Below are positions 15,291 through 43,585 of a DNA stretch of 64,000 bases, piece by piece; position 1 is the first letter of the stretch, and each line of letters begins with the position of its first letter. The notes below the pieces were generated by a model. The model was not told where the DNA came from and made no database searches. It was given only the letters and a program-made list of their open reading frames with translations. The DNA is from Ascidiella aspersa (Eukaryota), in the NCBI GenBank assembly GCA_963924565.1, contig OZ004609.1:20522001-20586000 (forward strand), read 5' to 3'. Both the position numbers and the translations under genes were made by a program.

Positions 15291-15331
15291 CCAACGTTTC
15301 GGCAACCTATACAAGACGCCGTCGTCAGGCA
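15291..15331 (-). ncRNA. Minimal hammerhead ribozyme-like core in the PLE 3' pseudo-LTR (possibly degenerate)
   Basis: Minus strand reads CTGACGA-cggcgtc-ttgtatag-gttgcc-GAAAC-GTT, i.e. CUGANGA / stem II / GAAA / palindromic AACGTT. Stem I pairing is weak. Confidence 0.6.
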
Positions 15332-20471: not shown

Positions 20472-23400
20472 CTATCGGTGATGTTCGGCTGTTGTTGCCC
20501 TTGCTGTTGCTGTATTAACCAATCTTGTTGCTGTTGATATTAGCGTTGCTTCCGTTACAATTGTGCTGACTGTAGTAACTGCGTCATTGTCGATGCTTCT
20601 AGTCTTGTCACCGATACGGACTGCGTACGTTGTAGACGGCTCTCTAGCGTTGCATAGCGCTGTGGTGCAGCACTTGTTGCGACAATTGCTGTGATTAGAA
20701 ATACAGGAAAATAAAATATGGGGTTTTGTTCAACTTGCTTGTGACTACTTTTTGTGGTCGCAAGTGAATTTAAAGATCATTTAACCTCTTATTTAGGAAG
20801 CTACCGGGTAAGGGTCGCCAAGAGTGAAGAGGAGAATATGTTTGCGGATAATACGCCAAACAAGTAATCATTATAATTCGCAACATATTTTTATACTTTG
20901 CATAATAGACAACCTGTAGGTGCCACTAACAATTTCTTTATACGTGACAATAAATAGGGAAATTATTGTAATACGTATTCGAACTGGCATTGCTGTACCA
21001 AAATGAGAGGCTCACAAACAGATTTCGATGCCATTAGCCAAACGTTCGTTCAGTATGTTTTTAATGATTAGGAAATGCCTTAAATTTTATTACTGTTAAC
21101 CAAAACATTGAACTTGTAAAAAAAAATTATAATACATGATTGTGAATTTCGGAAGTTTGTTCGTAAAGCAATTTGAACAGATGTATACCTAAGTTTATAA
21201 CGTCCTTTCAAAGTAAAGCTACTTTTTAAGAACGTGAATATAATACCAACCTAATACGGATGTTAGATCCTTCAAAACTAGAATATTTTAATCCATATAG
21301 TTGTTCATCACAAAACCGTTCATTGTTAGAGCAATCTTCAACAGTTTCGGCACACGCAAATGATGTTTGGTGATACGAAAACCACACCCCTACATTAATT
21401 TAAACTAATATTAGTTTATACATAACATCGCTACTCTTTTGCTGATTTTATTTTACTTAAATGTAAAAATATATAAATCCAATAGGCATATCTAATTTAT
21501 TGCTAATCTTAGGTAAAAACTGTAAAAGGTTAATACATAAGGCAGATGTAATACGTACATGGCTGAGATCGTTTCATGCTTACCGGTTGCTTGGGTGGTT
21601 ACATCCATTTCGTTGGTCAGGCAGGCGGTTGTGCAATAAATCTCAATTAGTGGCATTTCAAAAGAGAAGTTAACTTCTCCCATGTAGCAAGCGGTAGGTA
21701 TTCGAAGGTTGTAGTTTGCCGTCACGGCCATAATAGCTTGTGTAGGGGATGTAGTGGTCGTTATTAAATTTGGCGATATGAGGAATGTACTAGGTGTCGT
21801 TGTAAGAGTCTCCGTAGCATTGACACGAGCCGTGTGTGTGGTGATAACCGTGTAATTTCGGGTTGGATCCCTAGCATTGCATAAGGAAGTAGAGCAACAT
21901 CTGTTTCGACAGTTTCTAAGGAAAAGAGAAAAATTATACAAAAGACAAATATAGGTAAAATAAAAGCATTGCTATTTGTTTGGGATGTGATTTTAGAATA
22001 TCTCCGGCTGTATACGGCACAGAACCGGTGGACTTTTTCAAATCACTTATTTGAATATATATTTAGAATATTGAACATACAATTTGTGTTTACTTTTACG
22101 TAATTTAATTATTTTTGGTAACTTGTCTAGTGAATGTAACAATTTTAGACCAGTCATACGAACACAGTTTTCACGTCGGTTGCTTCCAAAATGTCATCTT
22201 GTATTTTATTTTGCAGGTCATCGCAAATCGGTTTGTTGTTTGAACAATCGTACAAAGTTTCGGAACAGCCAACCGAAGTTTGATGGAATGAAAATGGTTT
22301 ACCTGAATGGTTTATACGGATTGAATAGTATTTCGATATAGATGGTATTTTATACAATTCGTGTTACCCAACACTAAGGAGGATGCAAATGTCAAGCGAA
22401 TGTAGGGTAAAATAGTGACTTACCATCCACCATGAAGTTTACATCCATTTCGTTGGTCATGCAGGCAGTTGGGCAAAATACCTTGCTGAGTGGCAGTTTG
22501 TTGGCAAAATGAATTATTCCCATGAAACACGTTAAAGATGCTCCGTTTTTGTATTTGATCATAGTTGGTGCTTCTGGGGATTTTAGTGTTGTCATCGAAG
22601 GAGACAGTTCTACACTTTTTGATATTGTTGTTGGGGCTACAGCTGTTGCCGCTAAGGTTGTAGTGGTCACCTCAGCGCTTGTATCAACGGTGCCGGCTAT
22701 AGATTTATCCATGCCATTGCACAATGAATTTGTACAGCATTTATTCCGACAACTTCTGTTTGACGATACACGAAGTATAAAAAAAACAACTTAGACGGAG
22801 ACCCACAAGTATTAATTAAACAAAGTGTATACGAAAAAAAACCTATAGATTTACGGCAAGCCAAGGCATCATTTTGTTGTTAAACATATTTAACCGTTAT
22901 CATAATCGAGGCGTTTATAGCCATCAAACGAAAAAAAAGCTTCCACTAACGTGATATTGACGTCGGATGCAAAATCAGCTTGAAGGTTGAAAAAAAGGGA
23001 ATCGCAAAGGCGTTCATGGTTGTCACAGTCGTCAACATTTTCGGCGCACATTAGTGTAGTTCGATGAAATGAAAATGGTACGCCTACACGTATTTTTAGA
23101 CAAATAATAAATATATTGCATATTGATCCAGTTTATTACTTAAGCAATGCGTGTTTTTATGTACGCCTTACCAGCCGCTTGGGTGGTGACGCGAATTTCG
23201 TTGGTCAAGCAGGCGGTTGTGCAAAAAATCGTAACAAGTGGCAAATTATTGATAGAATCAATTTCACCCGTGTAGCAGGTTATAAGCTTTTCGTTGTTGT
23301 TTTGAAATATTGTTACAGATGGGGGTGTTTCTGTAGCTGTATTGCTTGTAGTTTCTGACGACGTTGTTGGCATTGCGGTTGCTTCAAATACCTTCGGTGT

Positions 23401-26400
23401 TAGAACAGCGCCGTTGTTTCGATCGGTATGGTTTGCAACAACCTCATAACTAATAGATTTATCTTTGCCGTTGCATAGCGATTTCGTACAGCATTTACTT
23501 CGACAATTTCTACCAAGATCAAATAAAAAAATGTTTGAAATGCATATAAAACATATACCTAAAACAGTGTAACAAAATATTTTTAAGAGCTGCCAAGGCG
23601 AATATATTTGCAAGAAAATGGTTGGACTTACATTAATTTCATCTCAGTATCTTCCAAAAAGATATCGTGTGTGTTATTTTGTAGATCCGCGCACGACGTA
23701 TGATTATTATTAGAGCAATCTTGCAAACTTTTGGCGCAGCCAACAAAGGTTTGGTGAAACGAAATTGGCATTCCTAGGGGCGATATACAATAATAACGAG
23801 TCAATAAGTTCTCGAACTGTTCATGATTTGAGCTAATTTTTACCAATATATGACAGCTTGTTAGTTTTTTTCTCTAGTAGCCATCTATTAGGTTGTAATG
23901 ACTTTTGTAGGTAAAGTGGAAACCGAATATTGCATGCTGTCGGCTGTAAACAGGGCACAATAACATGTTGGAAGAGCTTTATAACTTACCTACCACTTCA
24001 GAGTTCACGTCCATTTCATTGCTTAAACAAGCGGTTTTGCAATAAATCGTTCCCAAAGTTGAGTTAGTGAAAAAATTGATTTTTCCCTTATAACATAGCA
24101 TATTATGTTCTGGGTTGTTGTTGGATGTCGCTGTTACGTTGAGTGCTGAAATAGTTGATGTTACACTTGTTGCTTGTGTATTTGCATTTTCTGTTGTTAC
24201 TGTAGTTATAGCCTGTGTTGTTCGATTTAATAGTGGTGCTGTACTTTGTGTAGCGATACGTATTGTTGCTGAACTTGCGAGAAGTGTTGTTGTTGTAGTT
24301 CTTGTTGTAAGATGTGCTGTCCTTCTGGCTGTTGCTCCCGTCGATGCTGTTGTTTTTATTATTATTGTAGTAGTCAAATTCGAGTTTAATCTGGCATCTT
24401 GACCAAAGTGACTCATGGCATCGTACGATAGATTCGGATCTCTGTCATTGCATAGAGACGTAGCACAGCATCTATTTCGACAGTTTCTGAAAAAAATTGA
24501 TTCGTTTTGGCTTGTCTAATTAGATCTAAAACGCCTGAGAAAACAGGATAAGGTGATCAACAAGCCACATTTGGGACCTTCGTCTGTTGTGCACTACTAC
24601 TCATTCAACAAATTAGGTTGATTTTTTTTATTTTTAGCTCATGCATTGTTATTATGGCATTTTTTCCATAACATTTATATTAATGTAACCTGGACTTTCC
24701 TAAAAATCTGCCTGCTCGTTTTTCATGACATAATTTATTGTGATTGGTCTGTTGGTAATAAACTTACAAAATTTTGACTCTCGGATCGGCAGCTTGTGCT
24801 TCCTTATTAAGTCTGTCACATAATCGATCAGTGTTGTTGCAGTCGTCTATCATGGATGCACATGCAAATGATGTCTGGTGAAACGAAACTTTTGACTCTG
24901 AAAATAGAAATTTATAATAAACCATATACAAATTACTCGACGTTAGTCAGGTTAATTAGCGTATTTTCCAATCGTATTAATAACTATAATATTTCCAACG
25001 TGTACTGAATGCAACTTGTCAGCGTTGTCCCAGCTGTGTAAATAGTTACCGTTGCGACTCAAAATGAATTTTATTCAAGTAAAATGTAAGAAGGTGTTAC
25101 CTCTTGTTCAATATCACATATTATGCGGTGTACCATCCCGTGTGAGTTTGTAAAGCCGCGTGTTATAGCCGATGACATAAAAATGATTTTTTTCCAAAAC
25201 TATTCAACATTTAACCACACAGTACTTTACGTGTGTAGCTTGTTAAAAGTGCTAAATATTTCTTATGCCTTATGAAATCGTCATATCATTCATCAGGCCT
25301 GATATCAAACGCAAGCATTTTTGTTGGCCACTAAAAAAAATATTTTTGAAAATGCAATAATTTTTTATACGACGTACAAATAGCACTATATAGATAGAGT
25401 TATACACACCAAAAATGCAGCAATTTATGTCGTAAATTTTTTCATATTGTGTAATCGATTTTTGAAGTGACAGAAAATTTGTGGCGTACATTTTAAAATA
25501 GCAAAGGCGGTATTCGTCTGTAAAATTGCGATTTAAAATCTTTTATACCGCCTGGCCAAATATGTATCCCGATTAACGGGCCAAATGTGTAAAGCCGGAT
25601 TGAACCACAGGCTAAACGCCATTCATATTGCTGGAAACCTCCAGGTGTTAATAAGGAAAAAAAGGCTCACCGATGTAAGGCCATATACTGAAGCAATTTT
25701 TAATAAGCGCCACATTAAACGAAATTAGTGCACTTATTGCCTGTACCTTTGCAGACAAAAAGTATAACAATAATATTTAATCTCCGTTGGTGGCAGGAAC
25801 GGAACTCAGCGGGAGCACCAGACATGCAATAAGTTGGCGAAAAATTCTATGTCGCCTTAAAACATATAACAAAACTTGCTTGACCCACAGGGTTGTCTCG
25901 GCAATAACAATTAATTCAATAAACTTAATATTTAACTAATAATACTCCTATTTTGTCGTTTTTCTCTTTATGTATATCAAACCGTCTTTAATTAATCACT
26001 GTTTGAGTATAGTAAGAAACTCAGTAAATGCATATAGATTGAAGTCCGGTGGTCGGCAACCTATGGCCGCGGCCAGTCAATATATATCATCAGGCCCCCA
26101 CCTTTTACAAACTGGACACTAAAGTTTAAGGTTGCGCGGTAAAAAATTGCGTTTATTACAAATTGCGCAGTAAATTTTCGTTTTTGCGCACACCATTTCT
26201 ATTTTAAAATGCAAAAAAATATTTACACTTTTTATTATCGACTGTGACGTAATACTTTGTAAATTATTGTGCCTTATCGGTTTTTATCAATATTGCTATG
26301 TGTTTTATCTGAGGATAAAGTAAAATGGATCTTTACTGAAAAACTAGAAATATATAATAATAAATCAATAAAATAAATAATCGCGGACTTCCACGATCAC

Positions 26401-28186
26401 ACATAGTTGCTGAAATGATTGGTGAAAACAACATAGCGCATAGTTTAGTTATTCGTATAACAGTTGAATTGAATGTATTATCATTCAGTAAAACGACAAT
26501 CCAGTGACTATACTTACCGGCCGTTGTAATGGTCACGTCGATTTCATTGGTCAAACAGGCGGTTTTACAGGCAACTTGGGTGATAGCAGCACTGTCGAAG
26601 TTGATTGTTCCGCTAAAGCACATGGCAGGACCCGTTCGGTTGTCATGGTTACTGCTATTGGTGATGCTGGATCTTGTCAATGAACTTTTACTTGTGGCGA
26701 CCATGAGACGAGTGCTAAGTGCTGTTGGAACGGCTGTACTTGGACCACTGTCCACCGAGTAAGGGCCTCGCGGTGCATTGCAGTTATCGGTTGTGCAACA
26801 GGTTGCCGAACAAGCTCTAAGAGTATATATTCTGCCAGGGTTTGTCTGTTATACAACTCTTATTTAAAAATTCAGAAATGGTAAAAAAAACTTTCAAATA
26901 CAAAAGATGAGCCGTCGATTTTGTCATTTTAATAAACACTGCACCGATGAATTTCCCCATAGGGGGGAATTTTTAAGTTTAAGAGGGGATTTTGACTAAA
27001 TAAAGCACATTCTAGTTGGGGGTTATATTTACGTGCATATATGCATATTGATGAAAGGTATGAGCAGAGCCCAATTCAAAATTTTAACCATGCAGGCCTT
27101 TTTCGCAAGCAAGAAAAAAATTGGGTAAAGTGTACAGTTCCTTATTATTACGTTCAGCAGCATAAGGTGTACTTTACCCCAATCTGGCAGCAATGTTTGG
27201 AGTGCTGCTCTCGAGAAAAAAAAATCGTAATTCATTGCATTGTTTTGTAGAATTGCACATAGATTCCTCGTAGATGCAGTCAAAACTTGTTTCACGAAAA
27301 CTCGGGTAGGCTTAAATCATAAAAAAACCTTAGTTTGTCACGAGTTATTTCACTGAATTCGTAGCTATCTATGAACACCATATCAATTAAAAAGTGCCAC
27401 GGCCTGAAAAGTTTAGGAACCCCTGAGATGTTTCGTACTGAAGGCGCGAATCCAGGATTTTCGCCGATCCAAGATTTTTTTGAGGGTGGGGAGATTTTTT
27501 TAGATGTGGCGTCACAAAGGTTACATCTTTTAACGTAACTTCATAAAAGGTAACCATAAGAGCATACGGTTGGTTTATTTTGCTAAAATTACAGGTTTCA
27601 GATGTGTTCGATTAATACAAAAGCTACATTTTGAAAATGTTATCGATTTACGCAAAAACCGCCTTTATATCGTTTAAGTTGTCAAAACTTTCATTTTAGA
27701 GGGTGGGATGAGGCGCACGACTCCTTTTTTTTAACCATTTCACAAAACAAACATAGGTATACTAGAAACATAATGGAGGTGTGCGAAACAGTTTTACATT
27801 TCCGTGGTTAAAATAGACAAAAAAATGCAGTTTGAGTGGGTCATGGTCACGCGCCCCCCATGGATCCGCCCCTGTTAATAGACCACTAAGGCTATAGCAT
27901 ATTTAAAACTTGTCTTTAATCCTCAGGTTAAGGATTATGGTTAACAGTCTATACTAGAGTTTTCTTATATCAGCATCGGCATAAATGACATAGAATACAT
28001 AATATACGCACCTGTATCAGCTATACTCAGCGTGTATTCGACTCTCAAGCAGCGAAACGGACAGGAAGCAATGAATGTGCTGTCACTATTAAAATTTTTC
28101 ACTCCAATTGTGCAGGTCACGCTAAGCACGAAGTCAGCTGCCGACGATAGAGCAAGAACAGCGTACAACCAATTCTTCATGTTCAT
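20472..28186 (-). CDS. Gene A: secreted protein with 6 tandem 10-Cys Ly6/uPAR (three-finger)-like domains and Thr-rich mucin-like linkers, ~1001 aa
   Basis: 13 exons: 28186-28012, 27310-27178, 26816-26518, 24897-24768, 24486-23990, 23773-23632, 23509-23172, 23083-22951, 22755-22424, 22302-22164, 21915-21584, 21389-21251, 20688-20472. Sum is 3006 nt with alternating phase 1/2 GT-AG introns. Signal-peptide-like N-terminus (MKNWLYAVLALSSAADFVLS). Repeated motif C-[YF]-x-G-x-I-N-F...C-x-T-A-C-L-x-N-E-x-D-V / F-S-F-H-Q-T...C...C...C / N-C-x3-CC-x4-CN. AATAAA on the - strand near 20403-20408. Confidence 0.88.
27441..27873. mobile_element. Probable non-autonomous DNA transposon remnant (Harbinger-like termini) in intron 1 of gene A
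   Basis: Imperfect TIRs AGGCGCGAATCCA... / ...TGGATCCGCCCCT; TSD not clear. Confidence 0.45.
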
Positions 28187-30127
28187 ATTTTTTATAAAAT
28201 CTAATCAGAAAAATAATATCTACCGGTACGACATTCGTGCAGGTGGGGACCCAAAATGTATTCAAAACTTTGTTTTATTGTTATAAACTTATTCTGTTAA
28301 AAGGTGGCGTGAAAGGTATAGTCTGGTTGCTCAAAAGGAGCAAAACAGGTAAGCGACATAAATGAATAATCTTCATCGCAATGAAATGTAACAATGTTAA
28401 AGCTAGTATTCACCTTAGGGCACCGACATTTTCGAGCTAAATCTATATGTTATGCCTAGTGCGACTAAGCCTATTACCTGGCGTTTTCTTAGCTTTTACT
28501 AATTACTAAACTAAAACAATAAACCGGAAAATTAATTTGTAATGGTGAACTGCATATATTTATCTCAAGGCTCGTAGGTTATCTACGAAGTTTGCAGGAT
28601 AATCGTTGTTCATATTTCGCTGCCACCTTTTAATATTTATCAGGTTGCAGCAGTATAACTGCATTTATGACTGAAAAGAAAACCGCATACCGACATTCAC
28701 GAATCTCGAAAAGCGCTTTCAAATATTCTCTTAAATGCGTATTGATATAATTTCAAAACGCATTGCAACGATAATTTGACATTTTTGCGACACTCATTTA
28801 CACAAGGAGAGTTCTTAAAACTTTTTGCTAACACTTTTACTTTTCACTTTATATCACTTCTTGCTTTTTTGCCTTTACATCTTTTTCATTGTCATAAAAG
28901 AGTTTCAAGCAGTACCTCGTTATTACATTGTTAGTTTGAGCCCCTGAGGGACATTCTTTTGGACTCACGTGACTCTGTTAGTTGCTGCAATTTAAGCTTG
29001 GAGTTAAAGGCTGCTGTACTTTTTGCTGTTAAAGAGTTTGGAAAATTAAGTAAATTCGAAAACGGGGAAAATAATTAATTGTGATGTCCAAACAGAGTCC
29101 CAGCCAAAGTTTAAAATAATCGGCAAAATAATGTTTTACCACTACGTGGAGCTATACATCAAACATGTAGATTTGTTTAAAAAATAATACCGCAGTTAGT
29201 AAAAAAATCAGAATACCATACTACACTGGCAAAAAAGAATTTCGCAGCATATCGAGTTAAATGAGCCAGTCTTTAAAGTTACATCTGTGGCTTTTTAATT
29301 TGTGCTGCGTCTTTTTCTTTCGCCGTGTGACTTGTTATCGCGTAACAAAAAAATACCGAAGTGTAAACATCCCGGGGTTGGTTTAAAAGGGATTTTTTTA
29401 TGAAAAACATATTTGTGTATAATTTCACAGCCATAGGCCTTACGTCGTTCCTGCAAATATTTGAAAGCCGAAATTAAAAATGGATTTGACAGGCTTTATT
29501 TATGGTTCCACTTAACATAAGTGGCCTGAGGAGTATATACAAGGCTTCGAATGTTTGCGTCTTCGTCTTACGTCAGGTTTAAGAAACTTTCACCATCTTG
29601 GGCATCTTAGCAGCCTTTTGGATGTTTCAGTTCCCTTTAGCACATCTAGACCGTTCCTACACACAATTTCGCCTAACATTAGCATGGTATGATTTATCAC
29701 AATAACTATGTTGTCATTTTATGGCATGGTTTCCAGAGATGTTACGAATGGCGCACCAAACTAAAATGTCACTAGCAAGGGTATGCTTCTTCATTTTATG
29801 TTTTACCATAAACAACGTTAACCGCTTGGTGTAGATTTGAAAGCAGAACAATTTTCCTTGATTATTTGTATATGTTGTTGCGTCCGCTTTTATACATAAA
29901 AGTAAATTATGTAGGATTTTATAATTTTTTTCTAAAATACTTTAGAAAGATTCCTAAGCGATGAAATTGATTTGAAATTTGGATATATATATCCTGGCTT
30001 GTAATTACATAATGTTATAAGATTTATAAAATTATTTGTGGCAGAGTTTAATCTAGCCCGGTGTCGGACATAGTGTTAAAACACATTAATTACTTTTTTT
30101 TCCAGTTTTAAGAATTAAATATTTTAG

Positions 30128-30801
30128 TAGGGCGATTATTTTTTGACCAAAAATATGAGAAATTTTGACCTGAAAAATTGACATTTTGACAAATTTTGAC
30201 ATAAAAAAATATTTTTTTGGACAAAATTTTGACCTATTAGATATAAATTGATTAAAACGACATATTTTGTTTCAAGTATTGCATTGGTGTCTTGGCATCG
30301 TTAACCACACGTTTTTAATGCTTATCTGACTACTACTGGTCGAACACATCAGTTATATTTCGGGTTTATGGAAAACTCATGAAAATGCTTAGTTAGGCTC
30401 CAATTTTTGTCATTTCAAAAAGACCTGGTTATAATAAAATGCTGTGTAAATAGTTGAAATACAACGTGAACATAACTAATAACAAAAATCTAGTATATTA
30501 TTGGAATAGTAAATGGAACTTCATGAGGCCTGCGTGGTTATTTCTGCTGGCTCGCGTATGTCGCATATTATCATAGTGAAGATTTAATACACTTAAAATG
30601 TCATTGAATATAATTCAACACTAATTTATTTCTGATGGACAATTTTAAAAAGCTGCACATAGTTTTTTTTTTAATTTTATAAGTGATTTATATGTATTTT
30701 TAATCGATTTTCATATGAAATAATTTTGACAAATCTTGACCTAACGTGCAAATTTTGACAAAATTTTGAGTTTTTTTGACAAGTCAAAAATAATCGCCCT
30801 A
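30128..30801. mobile_element. MITE between genes A and B
   Basis: TIRs TAGGGCGATTATTTTT(T)GAC / GTCAAAAATAATCGCCCTA with repeated TTTTGAC subterminal motifs; TSD imperfect. Confidence 0.75.
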
Positions 30802-31719
30802 GTCATTAGTATATTTCTAGCAATAATGTACAGAAACTTATACATTCTTATCTACTCTGCCATGGATATATACAAAATACAGAGCCGATATGAAGGAAGC
30901 ATATGAGCTAATATTGGATGGTTTGTTGAGGCTTATCTCGTGCGGTATACGGAGGAAATTTCTGCACGTCTTTTTGCGCCTGGGGTGGTTTTGGTTCCCA
31001 GTTGCACAAATGGTTGTTTTCCAAAAGTCTCGCAAAACAAGTTGCTGCAAAACACTTTAGATTAAAAATATGAACGTGAATGTCTGACAGTATCAGCTTT
31101 TATGTAACATTAATATTTCTGTTATTAAGTGTACAGTTATAAGGGACAACCTTCTTAACACATTATAAAGGACGTTATTAGGGTACATACATCACAAACA
31201 TGAGGTTATTAAACATGAAATTATAGACTTAAATGTATCGCAACCCTAATATTATAACATCCTTGTAAAAGTTTTACTCACACTCTTTAGTTCGTGTTAA
31301 ACTTATAGGGACATCGTTCAACAGTCAACATTTTGACTAATCTTTTTGTTTGATTTAGGTTTTTACTTCCGTCATCACACTTGCGAAAACGTTCATTTTT
31401 TCCTGAACATATAAGCAGCTATAAGCGCACTCCCAAATTTGGTGATGATTGCAACGTTTATCACGTGCAGATTATTATCAATCGCATTTCTGCACTTTCT
31501 TAAAACGCCTGAGGTGGTTTTACTTCTTCATGGCAGCATAAGACTGATGGTTGATTTCAACAGGATTAAGTTGGCAGCATCGGCATGCGTCCGATCGTAA
31601 AAGGCGTAGCATAACCTTTGTTTGGAAACACACATAAAAAGCGACAATACCTAAAGCAGAAAAATCTATATAAACCATAGTATTAAGACTAACGACCTAA
31701 TTAAGCAAAATATGCAGTA

Positions 31720-32165: not shown

Positions 32166-33087
32166 AAACAGCAGCACTGTCCCATTTTTAGGCCATCCCA
32201 ATAAAGACAAAAACTATAGTCCTTAAGACTCCACAATAGAGATAAACTATCTAGCGTTGTGTAGGTGCAAAATAACTAAAAGGCACCTGTGACGCACGGC
32301 CAACGTGGCAATATGCGAAAAACTGTGATAATGCCTTTTTTGCGCCATGAAAGGAAAAAATCAAAGTCCTCATAAGTCTTGAATAATTTCGTTGTGTTGC
32401 AGACTATGCATTTTCGGGCAAAAAGTTTAAAGCTTTCGTGGTAGTGGGCTGTACAATTCCCCACAGAAAGGTGTGGTAGTTTGGGCAGATAGCGTTATGC
32501 GAAAAACACCGCATTTGACCAATCATGAAAGTTGTATGTTGGATCGTTCTGATAAGAAATTTATTCTACTTTATCTCCTGGCTAATAGCAAACCCATTTC
32601 GTTTAACTGAGAAGTTTAATTGAGTAAATCAGATTTGAGATCGCATCTATTTAGGTCATAATTTTTTCTAATCATGTCATTTATTTTTTAAGGGTTAAAC
32701 ATATTAGAGAAGAACGTAGGGCGACGGTAAAACAAAAGCTTAAGGTATTGTCATAGACGTTCGAGTCACAATTGTTGAGGAATTATTCCAGGATCCAGGG
32801 GTCACGTGATAATTCCCCTAAACTATAAACGCAATTCTTGTTTGAATACTAAATATGTTTCACCCAACTTTGAGAAAATATTTTCCAGCCCAAAGACGCC
32901 GTGTGTACCAAGGCGCTCTGCAAAAATGTTTAACTCACATATCTGTATTTAAATGTACTTTTTTGCGCTTCGCGCAGATGTATCTATGGTCTATTAAACT
33001 TAAATATAATATTAAAGTACGAATGGTAAACTAGTTGGATGTATTGGTATACCAAATAATCGTTTTCCTTAGGTTAATAAGACCAAA

Positions 33088-36000
33088 ATGCACTACTTCC
33101 TGTACGTAGTCGCTCTCTTGTTGTCCTCGATCGAATGTTCGCTCGCAATAATTTGTAGATCGGGAGTACAAAACTTCAACTCTGGCGAAGTTAATTCTGT
33201 AACATGTAGTTCTGTGACCCAACGCTGTTATAGGACGGAGTATATTGTGGATGTTACAAATACAGGTACGTGCTATCATTCCTACCAATGCAAAATATAG
33301 GACAACTATATACAAAGCCCACCGTTAGCCCGAGTTAATTTTCTTTTACCACGAAATACCGTAAATTATTGTATTTGTATCGAAGTTGTAGTTTTTTTTT
33401 AGTATAAGCGTGTCTCGCTTTAATAACCAGATTTTTATATTAAAGCCAATCCCACAAACTTTCGGCAAACCAGTTACGGCTGCGTGTTATCGCCACAGAC
33501 TTGCAATTCTGCAATAAGGTGCGACAGTTTGAGTAAGGCCTTTCGTGAAAACAACACGCCCGGTTTAACTTTGAGCATAAGGTATGTTTACTTTGATTTA
33601 AGTTCGGTTTGACTTTATAGTTATTTAAAGGAAATGCTTTATGTTTTTATTTAAAAATGAAGCTGATGTTTAAAAGGTTTTAGATATAATTTAAATTTTT
33701 TCCATGTGTTTAATTCGTTTTTAAAGTAACCCAAAAACACTGCTATCAAAATACATGCCCTCTTTTTTAAACTCTTTAGAGATTGTTCGACAAGCTGTTG
33801 CAACACCGATAACTGCAATGCACAACGTGGTCTTTATGCGGTGAACAGTGGCTCACGCACAACTGTTCCGCCAACAATCAGCACTTTGATGGTCGCCACA
33901 ACAACCAGCACTTTGGCAAGATCCAGCGCCACCATAAGCAGCAATCCTGTCAACCAACCAGGCTCAAATATGTGCTATAGCGGAGTGATTAACTTTGCCA
34001 CAAAAAAAATAACTCAAGTAGCTTGCAAAACCAAATGCTTGACCAATGATATTGACGTTAACGCAGCGACGAACGGCAAGTGCAATAAAACTATTGATCA
34101 GTTAAATTTAAATTACAAGTACATGTAAAAAAATTGTATTGCGTGTTTTCATTATCGTACTTTTTAAAGCCGGTGGATAATAATGCTATACGAATTTCTA
34201 AACTTTTTCAAAAGAAAGTTAATCAATATACTTGGGTACACTATGCACGGATCTGTAATGTAGCTTGATAATGAATTGCAAAGAACGAACTGAACGTTGA
34301 CACCTTATTAACACCGCTGTACCTGTTCAACACCTGAAGGTGCTAAATAATGCCCCTACTTTTGAAACTCAGATTGATAACAATTGCGTCCCATCTCCTA
34401 TAAGTGATGCTTGAAATGCTTTTCAGTCGCATTAACTAAAGATTATACAAGCTCGTGTCAAAACGTCTTAATCAAGATGCTGTTGATTTACTCGACCTTT
34501 TTGGCTTTGCAATTTATTATAAAGTTAATCAGATGTGTAGAATATCACATCCTGTCTCACGATATGTTGGAAAGGTAGAAATAATGTGTAAATAAGTATT
34601 AGCTATCAAGCTATGCATCACTGTCACCAGCGGGGGGTTTATCGCCATGTTGATAGACCAGGCGTAAGCTTGGGCTATTTGTTAAGAAGAACTTTTCTGT
34701 TGCAGGAATATCATTTTCCTTCCATCAGACTTCTTTTTCATGCGCATCCAATTTAGACGATTGCGACAACCAACGTCGCTTTTGCAACACAGTTCGAAGA
34801 GAACTACAAAAAGCCCTTCCGATATCAATAGACGTCTCTGTTATGTAAGTGCATTTAAAATAAAAACAAATTGTATCACATGAAAATCACTTATTCGGTA
34901 ATGTTTGATAAAATTAAACATGTCAGAATACGTTATTTTGTTTTTTAAAAGAAACTGTCGAAACAAGTGCTGTACCAAGTCGCTGTGTAACGCCAGAGAT
35001 CCTTCTCTTACGTACAAACGCTTAGATGGCCACATTCTTCCAAACGCTGACTTCAATGTCGCTGCAACTACTGCCAGAACAGTAGAAACTATCACGACTA
35101 CAACAATAGCACCAACTACAACGAACACTAATGTCGTTAGAAGACCTTTGTCCTGTTACTCGGGAGCAATCAATTTTGCCGTAAACAGGCCGCTAACCAA
35201 AGTTTCATGCTCAACCGCCTGCTTGACAAACGAAATAGACGTCAACTCCGAAGTAAATGGTAAGTAAAAGGTTAACATATTGTGATGCTATTTTGTGATT
35301 TTCGTTCATAAAATTAAAGAAAGAAGGCCTTCGTAAGCTTTTAATTTCAAGTTAATAAGGTGAACAAATACTTCTATGCCAAAGAATATATCCAAATAAC
35401 GCAGCCGATGATATGTTTGTGAATGTAAATAGTAGTCCTATATTTAAACGAAACTTTCTCGTATTTTTTTTTTCGATGTCGTAATTATTGCGTATTGAGA
35501 TCGTTTTTTCAAAAGTTGGCAAAACATTGTTGTAAACCAAACATTTTAAAATACTTAAGTTCCAGTCAAGCCACTTTTAAAACAACTTAAGATCAATTTA
35601 TTTGCAAAAAGTAGTATGTCAAGTCTACGCCAGTTAAGTCAAAGTCAAATCCTGGACATCGGTAATAAAGTTCGTATAAACTCGCCCAATCCAGATCAAT
35701 CATTCAATTAGCAAACAACAACAAAAACAGAGCAAGGAAAACATGATTATTCTTCAACAAACATATTAAAATTATTGTGTTGAAGTCAAGTTATGCTATA
35801 AAGACAAATCTCAAAGTCAGTCATTTCTACAAAAAACTCCACAAGTTAAGTCACGTTGCACAGAAGACATAGTCAATTTAAGTACTTTGTTTGGTTTAAT
35901 TATTGTCCTAAAACCCCTTAAATTTTCTTATGCATTTGAAACAAGAAGTGACGGAAATCTACCTTTTTTCTCAGGGTTCAAGTATTCTTTTCATCAAACC

Positions 36001-39000
36001 GTTTTTTCATGCGTATCCGATGTGGCCGAATGCAACGATCACAAACGCTATTGTGACGGAGTTCGCAGTGACCTAGAAAAAGCCGGTTTGAAAGTCTCAG
36101 TGGTGTGAGTATAAAACGTGTTCTATCAAATTCGATTGAAAAAGATGTGCAACCTTTTATGCCGACGAGCCAAATACGCGTATTCGGATTAGACCGCAGA
36201 CCAAACGGATTTCTTATCGTTTATATCAGATTACCTTACCACAGGGGTTCTTTAACTTTTTCTAACGCGGACCCCTAACACTTTTTTTGGCCTCGCGTGG
36301 ACCACAATAGGCAATTTTTTTTTTAAATGACGTCATGAATTTACGTCACAATACAAATAGACTTTTTAAGTCTGCTGATTTCGGTCCAAAAATGTGAAAG
36401 GGTGACGGAGTTTAATGCATTCAGTGCAATACCGGTTTATTTTTGATTAAACTGTTGTGTTTGTAAAATTGATTACTTCTTAACTATACACTAATATTTC
36501 AATTAGGCCTTCATAGACCCCTAAAACTAGGTGACGGATCCCTAAGGGGTCCATGGACCCCAGTTTAAGAACCCCTGCCTTACCAGAAAGGCTGTCAAAA
36601 ATATTCTTTATTGGTGTCTGCAAAAAATGCTCACCCACGAATGTTTTTTTTTATTTTAAAATCTAACGTAGATCGTACTTGGCTTAGCTATACGTTGGCA
36701 ACAGTGTGTTGGAAAACTAATTCATTGTTTTACTTGTTATTTCATTTTATAGTAACTGCAAAATCAAATGCTGTTCCACGCCATTGTGCAACACCAGAAA
36801 TCCTTCTCTTGCGTACAAACGCCTGGATGGCCACATTTCTCAAAACGCCGACTTGTTTGTCGCTACAACCACTGCTATTAGAATCCCAACAACAGTTACA
36901 CCGGCAATACCCTCATTGACGACAATATCGCGCAGCAGTCCTACTTTTTGTTACCAAGGAGCGATCAATTTTGCTGTGAAAGGTCCACTTAAAAAGGTTT
37001 TTTGCCAGACCTCCTGCTTGACCAACGAATTAGACATAAACTCCGAAGCAGGTGGTAAGTAAAGCAGGGACTTCGACCGTAAGACCAAAACTAAAACGAC
37101 ATCAACATCAAAATAAAACACAATTCGGGATAAGACCAAAATCGGACTAATATACCTCGTCTAATCAGAATATGACCTAAAACGGTCGGAATTAGACCTA
37201 AATGGCCAAAATATGACCTATACAACCTTTTTTCTAACCCAAAATCATACCTATAGCTTCATCACCAACTCCAATAATGCCAACCCTTACCTAATGTCTA
37301 ACCCCACCCAGTTTTCGTCCCAAACCCAAAACAGGGGCAAACAATCCGCAGCTCAAAAAGCGGTGCCTCATCACGTCGTTTAAATTATCGTCCAACGCCG
37401 ACACCAAAATGCCCCAATGGTCACACACCCGCTCCCCACAGTTTATGGCGTTACTTAGTCCATTTAGGCGTTATCTGATGATTTAGGACTTATTCAGACA
37501 GGTTTAGGTCGTATTTCAAACTAGTTTAGTTCAAATCTTTTTCACTACAAGTTTATTTAAAGGCCACCGGAAAAAAGTACGCCTTTAAATTTCATGTTAT
37601 ATAACAGAATTCTGCGTACGACCTTTCTTTGAAAATTATTATGTAAGATTTCAACGACACTTTTTACACATCATTTTTTCAGTGTAAAGCTTTTTATAAA
37701 CTGTTTTATTCCGTGCTAAAATCTTAATTGGCTTATGTCAATAATTTTTGAATAGCGATTTATTTAGAATCGAGCAACTTTTGTCAGTGTTTTTATGTTT
37801 TACCTTTCCTCAAGGACTCCTATGACGTATACAGCCTATGGGGGCATTTCATAGAAAATTATACCTATATCTGTCTGAAATATAGAAGTGTGAGTCAATT
37901 CATAATATAAATATGCTTTTAGGGACTAAGTTTTCATTCCACCAAACTTCGTTTTCATGCGCATCCACTGCGGACGAATGTGACAATACCGATCGCACTT
38001 GTAATGCAGTTCGCAGTGAACTACGGAGAAGCGGACTTGACGCCACAGTTTTGTAAGATACACACATGTGCTAAAAAAACTAAACTTTTTGTATTTAATG
38101 CTAAAAAGACAACTTTATGTCAACTTTCTGTGTACGGTTTATAAGCCTTAACCTATTAATGATGATTGATTACTATAGAACAGAAAAATGTATGAACAAA
38201 AAAAACATATAAGGAAATAACAAATTATTGTTTGTATATTAATACTATAGCGTTCGACAGAATTCATGTATCGTCTCCTACCTTCATTTGTACCAACGAC
38301 TTAAAAGAGAAATCAATTTTATATTATAATTCTGCAGAATAAAAAGGTCGTGAACAGTACTTATCTACGAAAGATAGACTAGAACCTAATCAAATTATCG
38401 TGTTGTTGTTATTTTACAGAAATTGTCAGATCCAATGCTGTAGTACGTCGTTATGTAACGCAAGAGATCCTTCTATGATTTACAAACAATTACCCGGACA
38501 CATTGCTCCGAATAATATGGGTCCTGAACGGGCTACGACTACGGTTAAAAGTACCACATCAACGACCACCACGACCCAAAGACCCGCAGTCACAACGACA
38601 GTGTCGGCACAAAACAACCAATTGAGTTCAATTTCTTGTTACAAAGGAGAGATCATGTTTTCCAAACAATTGCCACTAAAAAAAGTTTTCTGCACAACCG
38701 CCTGCTTGAACAACGAGTTGGACGTAAATGCTGATGCGACTGGTAAGCACTGCTACATTTTTTGTATTGTCGCTATTGTTAAAAATCCGTGGCTTGCGTT
38801 ATGTTATTTTTATTTAAAAATATTTAAGCAATAATGTTATTTATAGTTGTTTGTAAAAGTGTCACTGTGATAACTTAAACCGCCGTGCTCACCATTTGTG
38901 TTAATTATATTGTAGGGGTGAAATTATCTTTCCATCATAGCACATTTGGCTGCGCTGAAACTTTGAGCGATTGCTACGACAATGATCGATTTTGCAATGA

Positions 39001-42000
39001 ACAACTAATCAATTTAAAAGATGAAATTTTGCTTGCGACCAACATCAGTATCATGTTAGTACAAGTTTTGTAAAAATATATCACCCCGTGTTTAGTATTT
39101 TTTCCGGGCTACCCCCTTAAAAAACACGCCAATCGTAGGCTTGGCTCACATAATGTAAATCCGAACTTTCGCCAAATTTACAGAACATTTCGAAACCGCG
39201 ATGTTTTGTCAGAAAAGATGCGCGTACAACTGTGCCATAACGTAACGCAATAATCTGGCATACGTCAGACATAGCTGTAAAGGTGGAAATTATCTTAAGA
39301 AGAATTACCATTATATAGCACTACAGAAAAAAATATGAGCCTGTAAAAACATGTTTACTAAAAGGTAAAAAGGAGCAATTACATGTTTTCTTCATTCCAT
39401 TGTGTTTGTTCAGCAAAAAACAGCTATTTTTCTTATGCTTAAATATGCCTGGTAAATTAACGCCCAAAGAGTTAAAGAATCTAAAAGTATCTTTTGTAAC
39501 TGTCTAATGCGCCATACGTGGTTAATCTACTATATATGCATAAAGGCACGAAGTAAATGTAGCTAACCGCAACCTAATTTACATTGATAGTCATTTTTCA
39601 AGGCAAATTTAAACGCAAAATTAAATAGTAAAAGCACTTTTATGTTGCAACTTAAAATAATCTGGAACAACACCGAAAGCCATTGCAGACTCACCGAATC
39701 TGTCGATCAATGATGCAAACAGAGCAGGCTATAAAAACAACTAGCCTGCAGTGAGGTTCGAACTCACGACCTCCGGTCAAGCCGGGACCGTCGCTCCACC
39801 AACTGTGCTATGCAGGCCCAGAGAGGAGAGAGTCGAGAAACAACAAACCCGGAACAAGTACGAAAATATTTGTTTAACTATTTCCTGTTTTATCACAGAA
39901 ACTGTCGAAACAAATGCTGCCAAACATCCCTATGTAATGTAAGAGATCCCACCCTGACGTATAAACTTAGCACAAGTCACGCTAAACCCAACGGTGAGCC
40001 AGGTGAAATTACTACCGCTGCTGCCAGAGTTATTGTTGCGGTAACAACGACTCCAATGCCAGCAGCAACAACAGAGACCACAACAAAATCAGCGCTGATC
40101 ACAACCGTCGGAAATACAAACGTCGTAAACTACCAGAACCCGAAAACTTGTTATAGTGGATCGATTAGCTTTTTAGGGGAAACAATATCCGAGGTTCCCT
40201 GCAGGACGGCATGTTTAAGTAGCGAAGTAGACCTCAAAGGTTCTTCGTTTGGTAAGTTGGAAAAGTTATGTTTTCAAAAGAGTTTGATTTGTATAGGAGT
40301 ATGTTTTTGTCTGTCTTTGTAAAGTTCTTTGGTTAAATATTTAGACGTATGGGCTTATATCCGATATATTTGTAAACCATGACAAAACATCACTTTGCTC
40401 CAAGCAGGAAATTTATGTTTGTTGTTTGAGGCAACAAAACGTTATTGAGCAATTCTCAAACTTTTCGACCTGTTTATTTGCCTCCTTTGAATCCATGCTT
40501 AATATAGAACCCTTTAAAATTTAACAAAAAAAATATCAACAATTATAACCTTTCAAATGATTTATAAATTATCATTTTGAGAACCATGTTTTAGAGCAGT
40601 TTTCGTTTATTTATTTTGCTTTACTTGGTGCTAAAAAAAACATTTTAGAGTTATACACTGAAAATGTAAATACCTTTACATGCAGGAAACCCATTTTCGT
40701 TACACATGACGGTATTTGCGTGTGCCGATAACACGCAACAATGTGCAGATGACGACCAAATCTTCTGCAAATCTGTAAAACCTTTGTTGAAACAATTGGA
40801 CACGGGGATGTCCATAACAAACATTACTCTACAGTAAGAAATATGCATTAAGCAATACGGTTACTTTAGGCGTATTTTTTAGAGAGACATTAATGCAACA
40901 ATGTCAGGCCTGTGATAGACTATATTGTTTTCAGCCTTACGTCGGCGAGTTGTGAACTTAGAGGTTAAATCAGGAATACTAGTAATGTGGTCCATCAGTA
41001 AACGCAACAAAAATTGTATATGTAGTAATTAAATTACTATCGTATCGTGTTACACACGTGGTGTTTTTACAAAGGTTGTTTTGTTAAGAAACGATACAAA
41101 AGCCATTTTTGGTCGCTGAACGTGTAGCGCTTTAATCGGCACAGTCCTATTCGACAAAACTAATCAGAATTAAGTTTGGCGTTCGCGGGTTGGACAGTTT
41201 TCAGAGATTAAATCGCTCAAATTTAGATGTTTTTTAAATATTTTAGCTTTAAAATTTATTGCAAGCCTAAAACGAGATGCATAAGTTTTTTTTTACAAAT
41301 TCTCCCACAGAAAGATTGTAAAAATGTTTTTCTTGTAAAAATTTGTTTTAACAGAAATTGCAAAATATCATGCTGTTCCACGTCCCTGTGCAACGTAAAA
41401 GACCCCTTTACTAGCTATCAATTGTATTTCGACGTGAGTGGTGTAAACAGCGGCAGTGTTAACTCAGTAACAAGTACTGTCAGTTCAAGAGCAATAACTG
41501 CAACGAGTGCAGGAAGTTCGGGAAAATCATTAACCAGGTGTTACAGTGGTGCGGTAAATTTTGCCACAGAAAAAATTCAATCGGTCAAATGCACCACGGC
41601 CTGTCTGACAAGCGAACAAGACGTACATTTCAACACTGGGTCAGGTATAAGGCCTATTCTTGTGTCACTAATTCGCCAGTGCAAAACCGTTTTTTACTGT
41701 ATACTTGAATAAAAATCTTTTACATTTTTTGTTTGACCATTTCATAGAAATTTACCTGATAAAATCACACCAAATTGCACCTTGTTTTTAATGTTTTTAA
41801 TGCATTATTGTTATTTTTAAACAGGAACACCGATTTCCTTTAAACAGATGACTTTTGCTTGCGCCCCAAGTCTCAGTGTTTGTATTGGTCAATCATTTTG
41901 TAGATTATTTGGAAATTCTTTACAAAATTTGGATATCTCTTCTTCTGTTCGTGACTTAGAAATTCGGTAAGTTAACTCTCGGTAAATCCCATTTCATTGT

Positions 42001-43585
42001 GAGAATAAAGGTCTGTAACAAACAAAATATTTTCGTAAAAAAATAAATATTTGGTTTTATAAACAAGGATAGACATTTTTATTGCAATGAACAAACGGTA
42101 AATCAAAACTTACAGTTGTCAATAATTTTAACTTCGTACGTGCGCACTCCACCAGTGAACAGTGTGTGACTGCTAGTTTTGGCATGAAAATGTCATTAAA
42201 TAACACATTCTAAGTACACCAAACTGATCTTTGTTGGTTGGAACATCAATTACCGTATTTTTGCAACCAAAACTGTTTGTTTCCTATAGAAATTGCAGGA
42301 CCAAATGTTGTACCACCACTCACTGCAATGCCAAGGACCCATCCGCAAAGTTTGAATTAAATTCTATACCGTCTTCTGGAGGCGTTGACACTGGTCTCGA
42401 TTTTTCTACAACAACTTCGCTTGCCATGAAAACAACTACAGCTGCGACAACTGTGACAACAACTGTGACAACACCTGTGGCAACAACTTTGGCAACTAGA
42501 TACAACAATAACGCTAAACCGATAGTATGTTACAGTGGAATAGCCAATTTCGACACAATAACGCGAAAGCCGGTCAATTGTACCACTGCCTGTTTGACCA
42601 ACGAGGTGGATGTGGATGTTGTCGCACAGGGTAAATCTCTGCCACCTGATTTTGACATTACGTTACATTATAATATTATGTTACTTTTTTGTTTTAGCTT
42701 TTTAGAGAAACACGTAATTTAATTACTAATATGAACTATAAATTAAATTCATTTCAGAAGCATCCTTTTCCTTCCACCAGTCTACATACTCTTGCGCGAC
42801 AAGCCTTGCAGATTGTTATGTCAGCCGTTTGTGCGATGCAGTTGCAAGTGATGTAAGAGGAATGGACCTTGGATTGACTGTGTCTAGCATTAAAACTCAG
42901 TAAGCTGTTTATAAATTATATTATTTGAGAAAATTAGGTGTCAACAAACCCAATATACTAAATTTGATCACTGTGGAATATGGGCACCGAAATTTACAAT
43001 TGCCACTTTGTCACTTATTTATCACTTTCATAACCAATGTTTTTAGAAAAAGTAACAAAATAAACTTTTCAATACCAATTTTGTTATCTCAGAGGAAAAC
43101 GACATTGGCCATCCCACATATAACAATCATTGTTTCGGCCGTTGGCCTTTGGTAATTTGCCTATATTTATTAAGTTACAATGTCAATGATATCTGTCTTT
43201 ATACGGGGCTCAAATGGAACCTTCTGAATTAGCGACTCACATACTGAGCTTTTTCGTGAGCAGCATCATAACTTGCTCCGCTTATAGTTTGAACCTAATT
43301 GTTCGTTATAACTACTGTAAAACTGGGACGCGCTTCAACCGAACAAACACTGTACGGTAGGCCTACTAACAAACTAACTCGAGCCCCTCAGTAGACTCAA
43401 AAAAGAAAAGGCAACCAATAGATAAAACGCTTATAATTCTCTGCACCAGTTTTCCCAATGCCAGTGCGCAGTGCCAATAAACTATATACTATTTTTACAG
43501 AAATTGCAATACCAAGTGTTGCAACTCTTCCTACTGCAACAGTAAATCATCAACAAATGACTATGAACTGGTAATGAACCCTTAA
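33088..43585 (+). CDS. Gene B: secreted protein with 8 tandem 10-Cys Ly6/uPAR (three-finger)-like domains and Thr-rich mucin-like linkers, ~1193 aa
   Basis: 17 exons: 33088-33265, 33446-33581, 33780-34075, 34706-34844, 34952-35259, 35975-36104, 36753-37054, 37923-38052, 38420-38742, 38916-39054, 39899-40251, 40686-40833, 41355-41644, 41825-41966, 42290-42630, 42758-42899, 43501-43585. Sum is 3582 nt with alternating phase 1/2 introns, one with a GC donor. Signal peptide MHYFLYVVALLLSSIECSLA. Ends NCNTKCCNSSYCNSKSSTNDYELVMNP* with no hydrophobic tail. AATAAA at 43792-43797. Confidence 0.9.
36242..36577. mobile_element. hAT-type MITE in intron 6 of gene B
   Basis: TIRs CAGGGGTTCTT / AAGAACCCCTG; 8-bp TSD CCTTACCA (36234-36241, 36578-36585). 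Confidence 0.9.
39665..39817 (-). mobile_element. tRNA-derived SINE-like element (tRNA-like head 39744-39817)
   Basis: Minus strand GCCTGCA-TAGCACAGTTGG (A box)...GTGAG-TTCGAAC-CTCAC (B box/T arm)-TGCAGGC with a perfect acceptor stem but an aberrant anticodon loop. The adjacent body is shared with a second copy at ~56665-56765. Confidence 0.75.

Follow-up and report, generated by a model that had tools for sequence, protein, structure and literature searches.

Domains of the LU (Ly6/uPAR/three-finger) type adopt a three-finger fold, in which a disulfide core is combined with three beta-hairpin loops (Leth et al. 2019, PMC6600238). The consensus comprises 60-90 residues with 8-10 cysteines bonded 1-5, 2-3, 4-6, 7-8 and 9-10, and variants occur in which the 2-3 bond is lost or extra bonds are gained; ACVR2/BMPR2 and LYPD6 have lost the plesiotypic 2-3 bond and possess an additional one in loop 3 (PMC6600238). 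The signature of the domain consists of the adjacent cysteines 8 and 9, four residues, cysteine 10 and a subsequent non-glycosylated asparagine. In the corresponding genes, the exon set is divided by an intron at the tip of loop 2, the exon sets are symmetric and mostly of phase 1, and the proteins are either secreted or GPI-anchored via a signal in the last exon (PMC6600238). More than one LU domain is found in the GPI-anchored proteins uPAR (three), CD177 (four) and C4.4A/LYPD3 and Haldisin (two each), and multi-LU genes are also known from Drosophila (PMC6600238, PMC6337849). LYPD8, a heavily glycosylated LU protein, is freed at the mucosal surface and binds flagella (PMC5725809).

The window analysed here, a stretch of 64,000 nucleotides from the ascidian Ascidiella aspersa, contains two divergent paralogues, gene A (20472-28186, minus strand) and gene B (33088-43585, plus strand), both of which are intact. 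A preliminary description had listed the exons of such a pair, about 4.9 kb apart, and splicing them gave two continuous open reading frames, one encoding 1001 aa in 13 exons (gene A) and the other 1193 aa in 17 exons (gene B). The positions of the start codons, 28186 and 33088, likewise agree with the arrangement. All splice sites are canonical GT-AG sites with consistent phases, except for one GC-AG donor at 34076. The numbers of modules, described as six and eight, were recovered as well, since all 14 CCxxxxCN motifs lie at the claimed positions, six on the minus strand (20649-26800) and eight on the plus strand (33796-43540). Each module is divided over three exons into an N-part, an X exon and a C-part. 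The features are as follows:

28012-28186, minus strand: gene A exon 1, ATG, signal peptide and N-part (Cys 1-3) of module A1; open reading frame with a phase-1 GT donor at 28011
27178-27310, minus strand: gene A X exon 1, Cys 4-6 of A1
26518-26816, minus strand: gene A Y exon 1, Cys 7-10 of A1, linker 1 and Cys 1-3 of A2
24768-24897, minus strand: gene A X exon 2
23990-24486, minus strand: gene A Y exon 2, with the longest linker (117 aa)
23632-23773, minus strand: gene A X exon 3
23172-23509, minus strand: gene A Y exon 3
22951-23083, minus strand: gene A X exon 4
22424-22755, minus strand: gene A Y exon 4
22164-22302, minus strand: gene A X exon 5
21584-21915, minus strand: gene A Y exon 5
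21251-21389, minus strand: gene A X exon 6
20472-20688, minus strand: gene A last exon, Cys 7-10 of A6, Thr/Ala-rich tail of 58 aa, stop codon at 20472-20474
28187-33087, no strand: 4.9-kb spacer between both start codons, free of exons of the family
33088-33265, plus strand: gene B exon 1, ATG, signal peptide and N-part of module B1
33446-33581, plus strand: gene B X exon 1
33780-34075, plus strand: gene B Y exon 1, GC donor (GC-AG intron) at a position homologous to the other donors
34706-34844, plus strand: gene B X exon 2
34952-35259, plus strand: gene B Y exon 2
35975-36104, plus strand: gene B X exon 3
36753-37054, plus strand: gene B Y exon 3
37923-38052, plus strand: gene B X exon 4
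38420-38742, plus strand: gene B Y exon 4, RNA depth about 5
38916-39054, plus strand: gene B X exon 5, joint 39054>39899 with 9 reads
39899-40251, plus strand: gene B Y exon 5, joints 39054>39899 and 40251>40686
40686-40833, plus strand: gene B X exon 6, joints 40251>40686 and 40833>41355
41355-41644, plus strand: gene B Y exon 6, joints 40833>41355 and 41644>41825
41825-41966, plus strand: gene B X exon 7, joints 41644>41825 and 41966>42290
42290-42630, plus strand: gene B Y exon 7, joints 41966>42290 and 42630>42758
42758-42899, plus strand: gene B X exon 8, joints 42630>42758 and 42899>43501
43501-43585, plus strand: gene B last coding exon, Cys 7-10 of B8, 14-aa tail, stop codon at 43583-43585, joint 42899>43501
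43586-43800 (end approximate), plus strand: gene B 3' UTR, from RNA depth and AATAAA at 43792

Transcription was evaluated for the 3' portion of gene B (38300-44299). In this interval, stranded RNA-seq reads matched seven of the eight junctions to the base and showed transcription from the modelled strand, so that the spliced transcripts asked for in the preliminary description were found for this part of gene B. The reads also placed the donor of X exon 5 at 39054 and not at 39069. The depth at the 3' end dropped from 16 (43500-43699) to 0.6 (43700-43899) and then to 0; accordingly, the coverage ends about 100-300 nt past the stop codon, and no joint to an additional exon was observed in 38300-44299. 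From the depth table, an expression of about 12 RPKM was roughly estimated. For gene A, an AATAAA lies 64 nt downstream of the last exon. The lack of RNA evidence for gene A and the position of the 5' half of gene B outside the read coverage would be compatible with artefactual gene models or decaying pseudogenes, i.e. exon-like debris without function. However, frame and splice phase are kept through 30 exons and 140 of 140 module cysteines are intact at a module identity of 19-59%. For gene B this explanation is largely refuted by splicing as modelled on the correct strand, and altogether we regard it as highly improbable.

Each of the 14 modules comprises 97-102 aa. Exactly ten cysteines and a C-terminal CCxxxxCN are present in each of them, as had been described. 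The cysteines sum up to 60 in gene A and to 80 in gene B plus one within the signal peptide; no unpaired cysteine was found in the mature proteins, and exon-wise Pfam searches revealed neither VWD nor CK nor other polymerisation domains. Compared over 32 modules from the window and its paralogues, all ten cysteine columns are conserved, with pairwise identities of 19-59%. Since hydrophobic windows of 19 residues are limited to the N-terminal signal peptides of both proteins (residues 7-29 in exon 1 of gene A), a transmembrane segment and a C-terminal hydrophobic tail are absent, and the scan of the spliced models confirmed the claim of a signal peptide without TM or GPI tail.

The linkers between the modules have a length of 48-117 aa and contain 12-29% Thr, 28-37% Thr + Ser and 42-54% Thr + Ser + Pro + Ala. 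While their Thr/Ser-rich character stood, the mucin PTS design attributed to them did not, as the amount of Pro is only 2-10% and no tandem repeats were found in the linkers of gene A and gene B. The linkers thus resemble mucins in character but do not represent genuine PTS repeat domains. The sequons for N-glycosylation, previously noted as frequent, turned out not to be so: compared to composition shuffles, gene A is at chance level with 16 sequons (19.8 +/- 3.6 expected), and gene B with 5 sequons (21.7 +/- 3.9 expected) is strongly and significantly depleted, none of 2000 shuffles being equally low.

Since the cysteine pattern, the invariant non-sequon Asn, the predicted intron at the loop-2 tip and the GPI-type paralogues with one or two modules all point in this direction, an LU-like domain is the best available reading of the module. 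CC-x4-C-N was found in 14 of 14 window modules and 18 of 18 paralogue modules, in none of which the Asn belongs to an N-x-S/T sequon. As in LU domains of the ACVR2/BMPR2/LYPD6 type, there are ten cysteines and a CC-x4-CN with non-glycosylated Asn; the missing 2-3 pair, the extra loop-3 pair and the loop-2-tip intron of this type are predicted for the window modules. The cysteine spacing can be mapped co-linearly onto this variant. In every module, a phase-1 intron lies between the strand-like segments 'CLTNExDV' and 'FSFHQT', which corresponds to the predicted loop-2 tip; three of these junctions in gene B were confirmed by RNA-seq reads, the loop assignment itself being a prediction. The alternative of secretion or GPI anchorage known for LU proteins is also seen, as the window genes encode a signal peptide without anchor and the paralogues are of GPI type, both according to rule-of-thumb readings. 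Most likely, the module would adopt the three-finger (LU) fold in the cysteine configuration of ACVR2/BMPR2/LYPD6, with predicted pairs 1-3, 2-4, 5-8, 6-7 and 9-10 in module numbering.

Several properties differ from the known LU domains. At about 100 aa the module is longer than the 60-90 aa of the consensus, the N-terminal CxxC is absent and just 3 residues separate Cys 2 and Cys 3. Unlike LU genes, the window genes contain an extra phase-2 intron ahead of Cys 7, encode the signal peptide on the same exon as the predicted finger 1 and have no introns between modules. Outside the C-terminal motif, no similarity to the ACVR2/BMPR2/LYPD6 type was detectable by sequence or profile.

The sequence-based tests against LU families, in contrast to the features above, were all negative. 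Pfam gave no consistent match for single exons or for any member of the exon alignments, the Y-exon profile had 0 matches among 1.84 billion protein representatives, and a six-frame search of the genome with PF00021, PF00087, PF16975, PF01064 and PF08917 gave matches at other loci and none on the window. These family-profile tests are low in power because only exons served as queries. When compared by hhalign with canonical LU domains of the same genome, the module N-parts (against the N-halves) and, globally, the 32 spliced modules (against three domains) each reached a probability of 0.1%; the local alignment of the 32 modules was confined to the C-terminal motif of 12 columns (E 0.025), while in the global one the cysteines fall in the expected LU register at a non-significant score. 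In the PDB, X-exon and N-part profiles found chance-level matches only, among them a TGF-beta receptor type-2 chain for the X exon (E 1.1). In the protein atlas, the nearest named cluster for a Y exon was the TGF-beta receptor II ectodomain (0.75), and nothing was found for an X exon. Both hits are weak leads. The word-indexed protein searches returned nothing, whether the query was an open stretch of 195 aa from gene B, a canonical LU exon or an alignment of canonical LU exons. One metagenome locus (L038) was rejected, since it is a ThiI gene from a bacterium that matches over 11 residues by chance. AlphaFold modelling of one Y exon alone, which encodes two half-modules and a linker, yielded an uninformative pLDDT of 38, and neither a retrocopy nor a family member in which a single exon encodes the complete module was found in the genome. 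Judged by its sequence, the module is an orphan that shares no more than the C-terminal motif with the canonical LU genes of the genome.

These results could be explained by a separate disulfide-rich fold that reached CCxxxxCN by convergence and represents a new, tunicate-specific domain family. Besides the negative tests and the lack of homologues for the Y-exon profile, the excess over the LU consensus length and the missing CxxC start speak for it. On the other hand, LU domains are notoriously divergent, the cysteine spacing follows a published variant, and the Asn after the last cysteine, the predicted loop-2-tip intron and the small GPI-type paralogues are typical traits of Ly6 genes; even the non-significant global alignment has the cysteines in the register expected. 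We therefore regard a non-LU fold as rather unlikely. With such a hitherto unrecognised fold, the family would comprise tunicate-restricted GPI-anchored surface proteins and anchorless poly-module filaments with a ligand class of their own, a reading that we regard as equally unlikely.

The LU-like reading gains from the paralogues, which are located in the same genome at C3:7.17-7.30 Mb, C2:30.38 Mb and C2:27.79 Mb. Each encodes a signal peptide followed by one or two modules. Most of them end in a GPI-type tail, in which small residues are followed by a short polar spacer and then by about 19 hydrophobic residues; signal peptide and tail were called by rule of thumb. With the window genes they share the ten-Cys module, its division into N-part, X exon and C-part, the intron phases and a Thr/Ser-rich spacer between modules, whereas the window genes differ by their six and eight modules and the absence of an anchor signal. 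In a tree of the modules, D1-type and D2-type clades, both represented among the paralogues, were supported by 100/99 each; A1 and B1 belong to the D1 clade and all remaining window modules to the D2 clade. Each protein would accordingly be composed of a signal peptide, one D1-type module and five (A) or seven (B) D2-type modules, without membrane anchor. The ancestor of both genes was probably a two-module gene, in which a symmetric cassette of X and Y exon, with phase 1 at both ends and spanning the interval between consecutive predicted loop-2 tips, would have been duplicated repeatedly and the GPI signal would have been lost. A separate comparison of N, X and C parts for the one-step shift in similarity expected from cassette duplication gave no clean signal due to the high divergence.

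Tandem LU-type modules in one chain, formed by duplication of exon sets, would connect genes A and B with the known multi-LU proteins. In the latter, a generic two-exon set accounts for each added domain, whereas the borders of the window cassette do not coincide with those of the module. Furthermore, the N-terminal domain of the GPI-anchored multi-LU proteins lacks the 7-8 bond, while the window modules all contain ten cysteines, and genes A and B have no anchor. The modules of uPAR, CD177, C4.4A and Haldisin abut and pack; those of the window are spaced by long linkers. C4.4A possesses a Ser/Thr/Pro-rich O-glycosylated stalk. The view that the architecture is an unrecognised one can be kept only in part: the exon-wise searches revealed no characterised family that matches over the full length or in part, but the multi-LU proteins uPAR, CD177 and C4.4A and the glycosylated LYPD8 are known.

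Altogether, we consider it probable that genes A and B belong to a lineage-restricted Ly6-like family and that amplification of the cassette and loss of the GPI signal gave rise to soluble multivalent glycoproteins. With their Thr/Ser-rich spacers presumably O-glycosylated, such proteins might present six to eight binding modules on a stiff filament of about 100 nm. The ligands could be of the same kind as those of the GPI-anchored paralogues, and a role as agglutinin, decoy or surface- or mucus-associated recognition protein would be conceivable, instead of a covalently polymerised structural material. LYPD8 is a precedent for an LU module acting as extracellular binder in mucus, although it has a single LU domain, is N-glycosylated and is GPI-anchored before being shed.

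Gel-forming mucins are likewise secreted and alternate Thr/Ser-rich stretches with Cys-rich modules. It had been proposed that proteins A and B are co-expressed subunits of one mucin-built extracellular material, e.g. a mucus feeding net, the tunic or an adhesive, and the long, modular, secreted-type proteins with their Thr/Ser-rich spacers, the adjacent, divergent genes and the moderate expression of gene B would suit this idea. Mucins, however, contain VWD, CysD and CK domains and tandem PTS repeats, none of which was seen in exon-wise Pfam and linker repeat searches, and compared to them the window proteins are low in Pro at 28-37% Thr + Ser and offer no free cysteine for multimerisation. 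In addition, the spacers are short and non-repetitive, the distance of 4.9 kb that separates both start codons does not argue for a shared promoter, and the closest relatives are of the GPI-anchored cell-surface type, not matrix proteins. Nothing was found that supports two subunits of one material, and we consider this proposal improbable.

The family is invisible to Pfam-based annotation. Its proposed origin describes a route in which exon phase rather than domain boundaries would dictate the expansion of repeats, with a cassette offset by half a domain. The architecture of long arrays of a repeated module is unusual, and the fold of this module is probably Ly6-like, as far as sequence features indicate. 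A recent survey of invertebrate LU proteins did not include tunicates (PMC13719153), and the present family therefore adds a chordate outgroup. If the fold is not LU, the modules would represent a new extracellular domain family; if they are three-finger domains, genes A and B would encode some of the longest LU arrays described and the first one with mucin-like spacers between the modules of an anchorless protein.

In a six-frame scan of the 64-kb window, the minus strand showed six copies of the motif CCxxxxCN (20649-26800) and the plus strand eight (33796-43540), with none elsewhere in the window. Two further conserved pieces, 'C.TACLTNE.DV' and 'FSFHQT.F.C', were found either side of every motif. 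When open stretches between canonical acceptors (polypyrimidine tract and AG) and G|GTAAG-type donors were taken as exon pieces with fixed phases, two divergent genes with uninterrupted frames resulted after joining:

28186 to 20472, minus strand: gene A, 13 exons, 1001 aa
33088 to 43585, plus strand: gene B, 17 exons, 1193 aa

The donor of exon 3 in gene B is G|GCAAGT, giving a GC-AG intron at 34076, while all paralogous exons carry G|GTAAG at the same position. The models were joined and analysed by script; single exons served as queries in the database searches and as input for folding. In genes A and B, a whole ten-Cys module is never contained in a single exon. The X exon carries Cys 4-6, and the Y exon comprises Cys 7-10 of one module, the entire spacer and Cys 1-3 of the following module. 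Since the intron downstream of the Y exon is in phase 1 and that downstream of the X exon in phase 2, an X+Y pair begins and ends in phase 1, so that its duplication leaves the frame intact.

Both proteins start with a signal-peptide-like hydrophobic segment, the only stretch with a Kyte-Doolittle 19-residue mean above 1.6. Gene A encodes six and gene B eight modules of 97-102 aa with exactly ten Cys apiece, so that none is spare for intermolecular bonds. The spacers between the modules (48-117 aa) showed amounts of 12-29% for Thr, 28-37% for T+S and 42-54% for T+S+P+A, and no tandem repeats were found in them. The C-terminal tails comprise 58 aa in gene A (Thr/Ala-rich) and 14 aa in gene B, and a hydrophobic C-terminus is absent in both. 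Motif scan and joined models bear out the preliminary description as regards the six and eight ten-Cys copies ending in CCxxxxCN, the Thr/Ser-rich linkers and the lack of a TM or GPI tail. Its statement that N-glycosylation sequons are frequent had to be dropped: compared to composition shuffles, gene A does not differ from chance (16 vs 19.8 expected), and the whole coding sequence of gene B is strongly depleted in N-x-S/T (5 vs 21.7 +/- 3.9 expected, 0/2000 shuffles as low).

For expression, reads from one stranded paired-end RNA-seq experiment on the same species were aligned to 38300-44299, the 3' half of gene B. Reads were found on the gene B strand only, with exons covered at a depth of 4-22 and introns at about 0, and seven junctions agreed base for base with the model (39054>39899, 40251>40686, 40833>41355, 41644>41825, 41966>42290, 42630>42758, 42899>43501), the first of which resolves an ambiguous donor. 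Spliced transcripts, proposed as a check on the gene pair, were accordingly confirmed for the part of gene B covered by the alignment. Coverage stops within a few hundred bases past the stop codon and no read in this region links the last exon to downstream sequence; therefore, the anchorless C-terminus of gene B is real. Expression was estimated from the depth table at about 12 RPKM. The seven coding differences between reads and reference (five non-synonymous, two synonymous) are too few for interpretation.

The gene B intron 39055-39898 comprises a tRNA-derived SINE-like repeat (39500-39900; tRNA-Ala-like 39742-39818, minus strand) with a summed depth of about 10^5 compared to about 78 in the flanks in the contigs of the DNA run, and with RNA reads on both strands and many loose ends. 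Elsewhere in the window, ORFs at 15325-16743 on the minus strand showed a weak GIY-YIG match below the cut-off (E 5.5e-4), beside reverse-transcriptase-like stretches seen by eye (no Pfam match), and are possibly the remnant of a Penelope-like retroelement. A 325-aa open frame at 59734-60711 on the plus strand matches the MFS_1 transporter domain (E 7e-20) and is probably a single large exon belonging to a solute carrier gene.

Judged by the defining features of the LU (Ly6/uPAR/three-finger) domain compiled by Leth et al. 2019 (PMC6600238), the sequence features of the module suggest that it is probably such a domain. Adjacent Cys 8-9, four residues, Cys 10 and a non-glycosylated Asn follow each other in 32/32 modules. 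LU domains have an intron with phase-1 symmetry at the tip of loop 2 (PMC6600238); in the module, a phase-1 intron sits between 'CLTNExDV' and 'FSFHQTxFxC', segments of alternating hydrophobic and polar residues, and would occupy this very position if these were the two strands of loop 2. Predicted GPI-anchored and secreted forms, a further LU feature, both occur within the gene family. The module lacks the N-terminal CxxC pair, and a further Cys pair is present between Cys 5 and Cys 8; in the cysteine order this would correspond exactly to the lost 2-3 bond and the added bond in loop 3 described for ACVR2/BMPR2 and LYPD6 (PMC6600238).

Another explanation would be a separate fold, which we consider rather unlikely, although every sequence test for LU came out negative. 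Pfam gave no match on the exons of genes A and B, five LU-clan Pfam models matched other loci of the genome and none in the window, and PDB sequence searches found nothing for the module exons. Compared by hhalign with canonical LU genes from elsewhere in this genome, the module sequences reached a probability of 0.1%, and the local alignment covered only the 12-column C-terminal motif. This comparison set, starting with CxxC and recognised by PF00021/PF00087, lies at C9:8.33-8.38 Mb, C1:12.05 Mb, C4:11.93 Mb and C5:22.62 Mb, and some of its genes have 12-13 Cys (LYPD6-like). The TGF-beta receptor II ectodomain gave two weak pointers, which are leads rather than evidence. Predicted by itself, a Y exon yields no fold (pLDDT 38), and no family member with the entire module in one exon was found. 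A tandem array at C3:10.49-10.69 Mb (period about 1 kb) comprises units weakly matching the C-terminal half of Activin_recp (16-19 bits), all interrupted by stop codons.

Outside the genome, the Y-exon profile had 0 matches among 1.84 billion protein representatives, and a word-indexed protein search gave no match. The lone metagenome match, a bacterial ThiI gene, was rejected as a chance match. Neither whole nor partial matches to a characterised family turned up in these sources. Within the 308.6-Mb genome, the X-exon profile detected the 14 window exons and about 22 others, at the following paralogue loci (L001-L019):

C3:7.17-7.30 Mb: cluster of paralogues
C2:30.378-30.385 Mb: paralogue locus
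C2:27.794-27.797 Mb: paralogue locus

These dozen or so genes, near-identical to diverged and including inverted and tandem copies, show the same three-piece module and intron phases with only one or two modules. In most of them, CN is followed after a few residues by a small-residue run, a brief polar spacer and, up to the stop, a hydrophobic stretch of about 19 residues, which by eye has the form typical of a GPI-attachment signal; a few have a charged tail instead. One paralogue, with signal peptide, one module and GPI-type tail, is laid out like a classical Ly6 gene.

A maximum-likelihood tree of the 32 modules showed two clades with 100/99 support, D1 with the first module of A, of B and of the two-module paralogues, and D2 with every other module. 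In the window, the pairings are A1-B1 (41% identity) and A2-B2 (57%); B2, B3 and B4 are mutually 53-59% alike, and A3-A6 cluster with B5. The proposed order of events is a D1-D2 ancestor, some amplification of D2, an inverted duplication yielding A and B, and more amplification in each. Module identity is only 19-59% while every Cys is conserved, which argues for long-standing purifying selection.

Known multi-LU proteins comprise uPAR with three LU domains, CD177 with four, C4.4A and Haldisin with two, two-LU GPI proteins of zebrafish and Drosophila genes with several (PMC6600238, PMC6337849). All of these are anchored proteins with abutting domains, each of which keeps the generic pair of exons, whereas in A and B the anchor is lacking, mucin-like spacers intervene and the cassette is offset relative to the domain. 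A 2026 survey of invertebrates, in which tunicates were not included, describes sponge proteins with one to three LU domains and, for some other phyla, mosaics in which LU is combined with different domains (PMC13719153). Since such a layout occurs in neither, the combination of 6-8 modules, mucin-like spacers, no anchor and an out-of-register cassette is a new variation on the known multi-LU design, provided that the fold is LU.

Regarding function, A and B are anchorless proteins of the secreted type without free Cys and with Thr/Ser-rich segments between the modules, and they are related to proteins of the GPI-anchored type. Mucin-like segments usually extend by about 0.25 nm per residue. 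With its spacers, presumably O-glycosylated and stiff, the gene B protein would present eight binding modules along a length of roughly 100 nm. As a soluble multivalent counterpart of a cell-surface binder, it could act on the ligands that the anchored paralogues recognise, by agglutination, sequestration or bridging. LU proteins provide precedents for pairs of soluble and anchored forms, and LYPD8 provides one for the binding of bacteria at a mucosal surface by a glycosylated LU protein (PMC5725809). That A and B are two subunits of one structural material is less likely, since polymerisation domains and spare Cys are lacking and the 4.9 kb between the start codons say little on co-regulation. 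Altogether, the A/B pair is a further case in which a Cys-rich extracellular family has undergone lineage-specific expansion.
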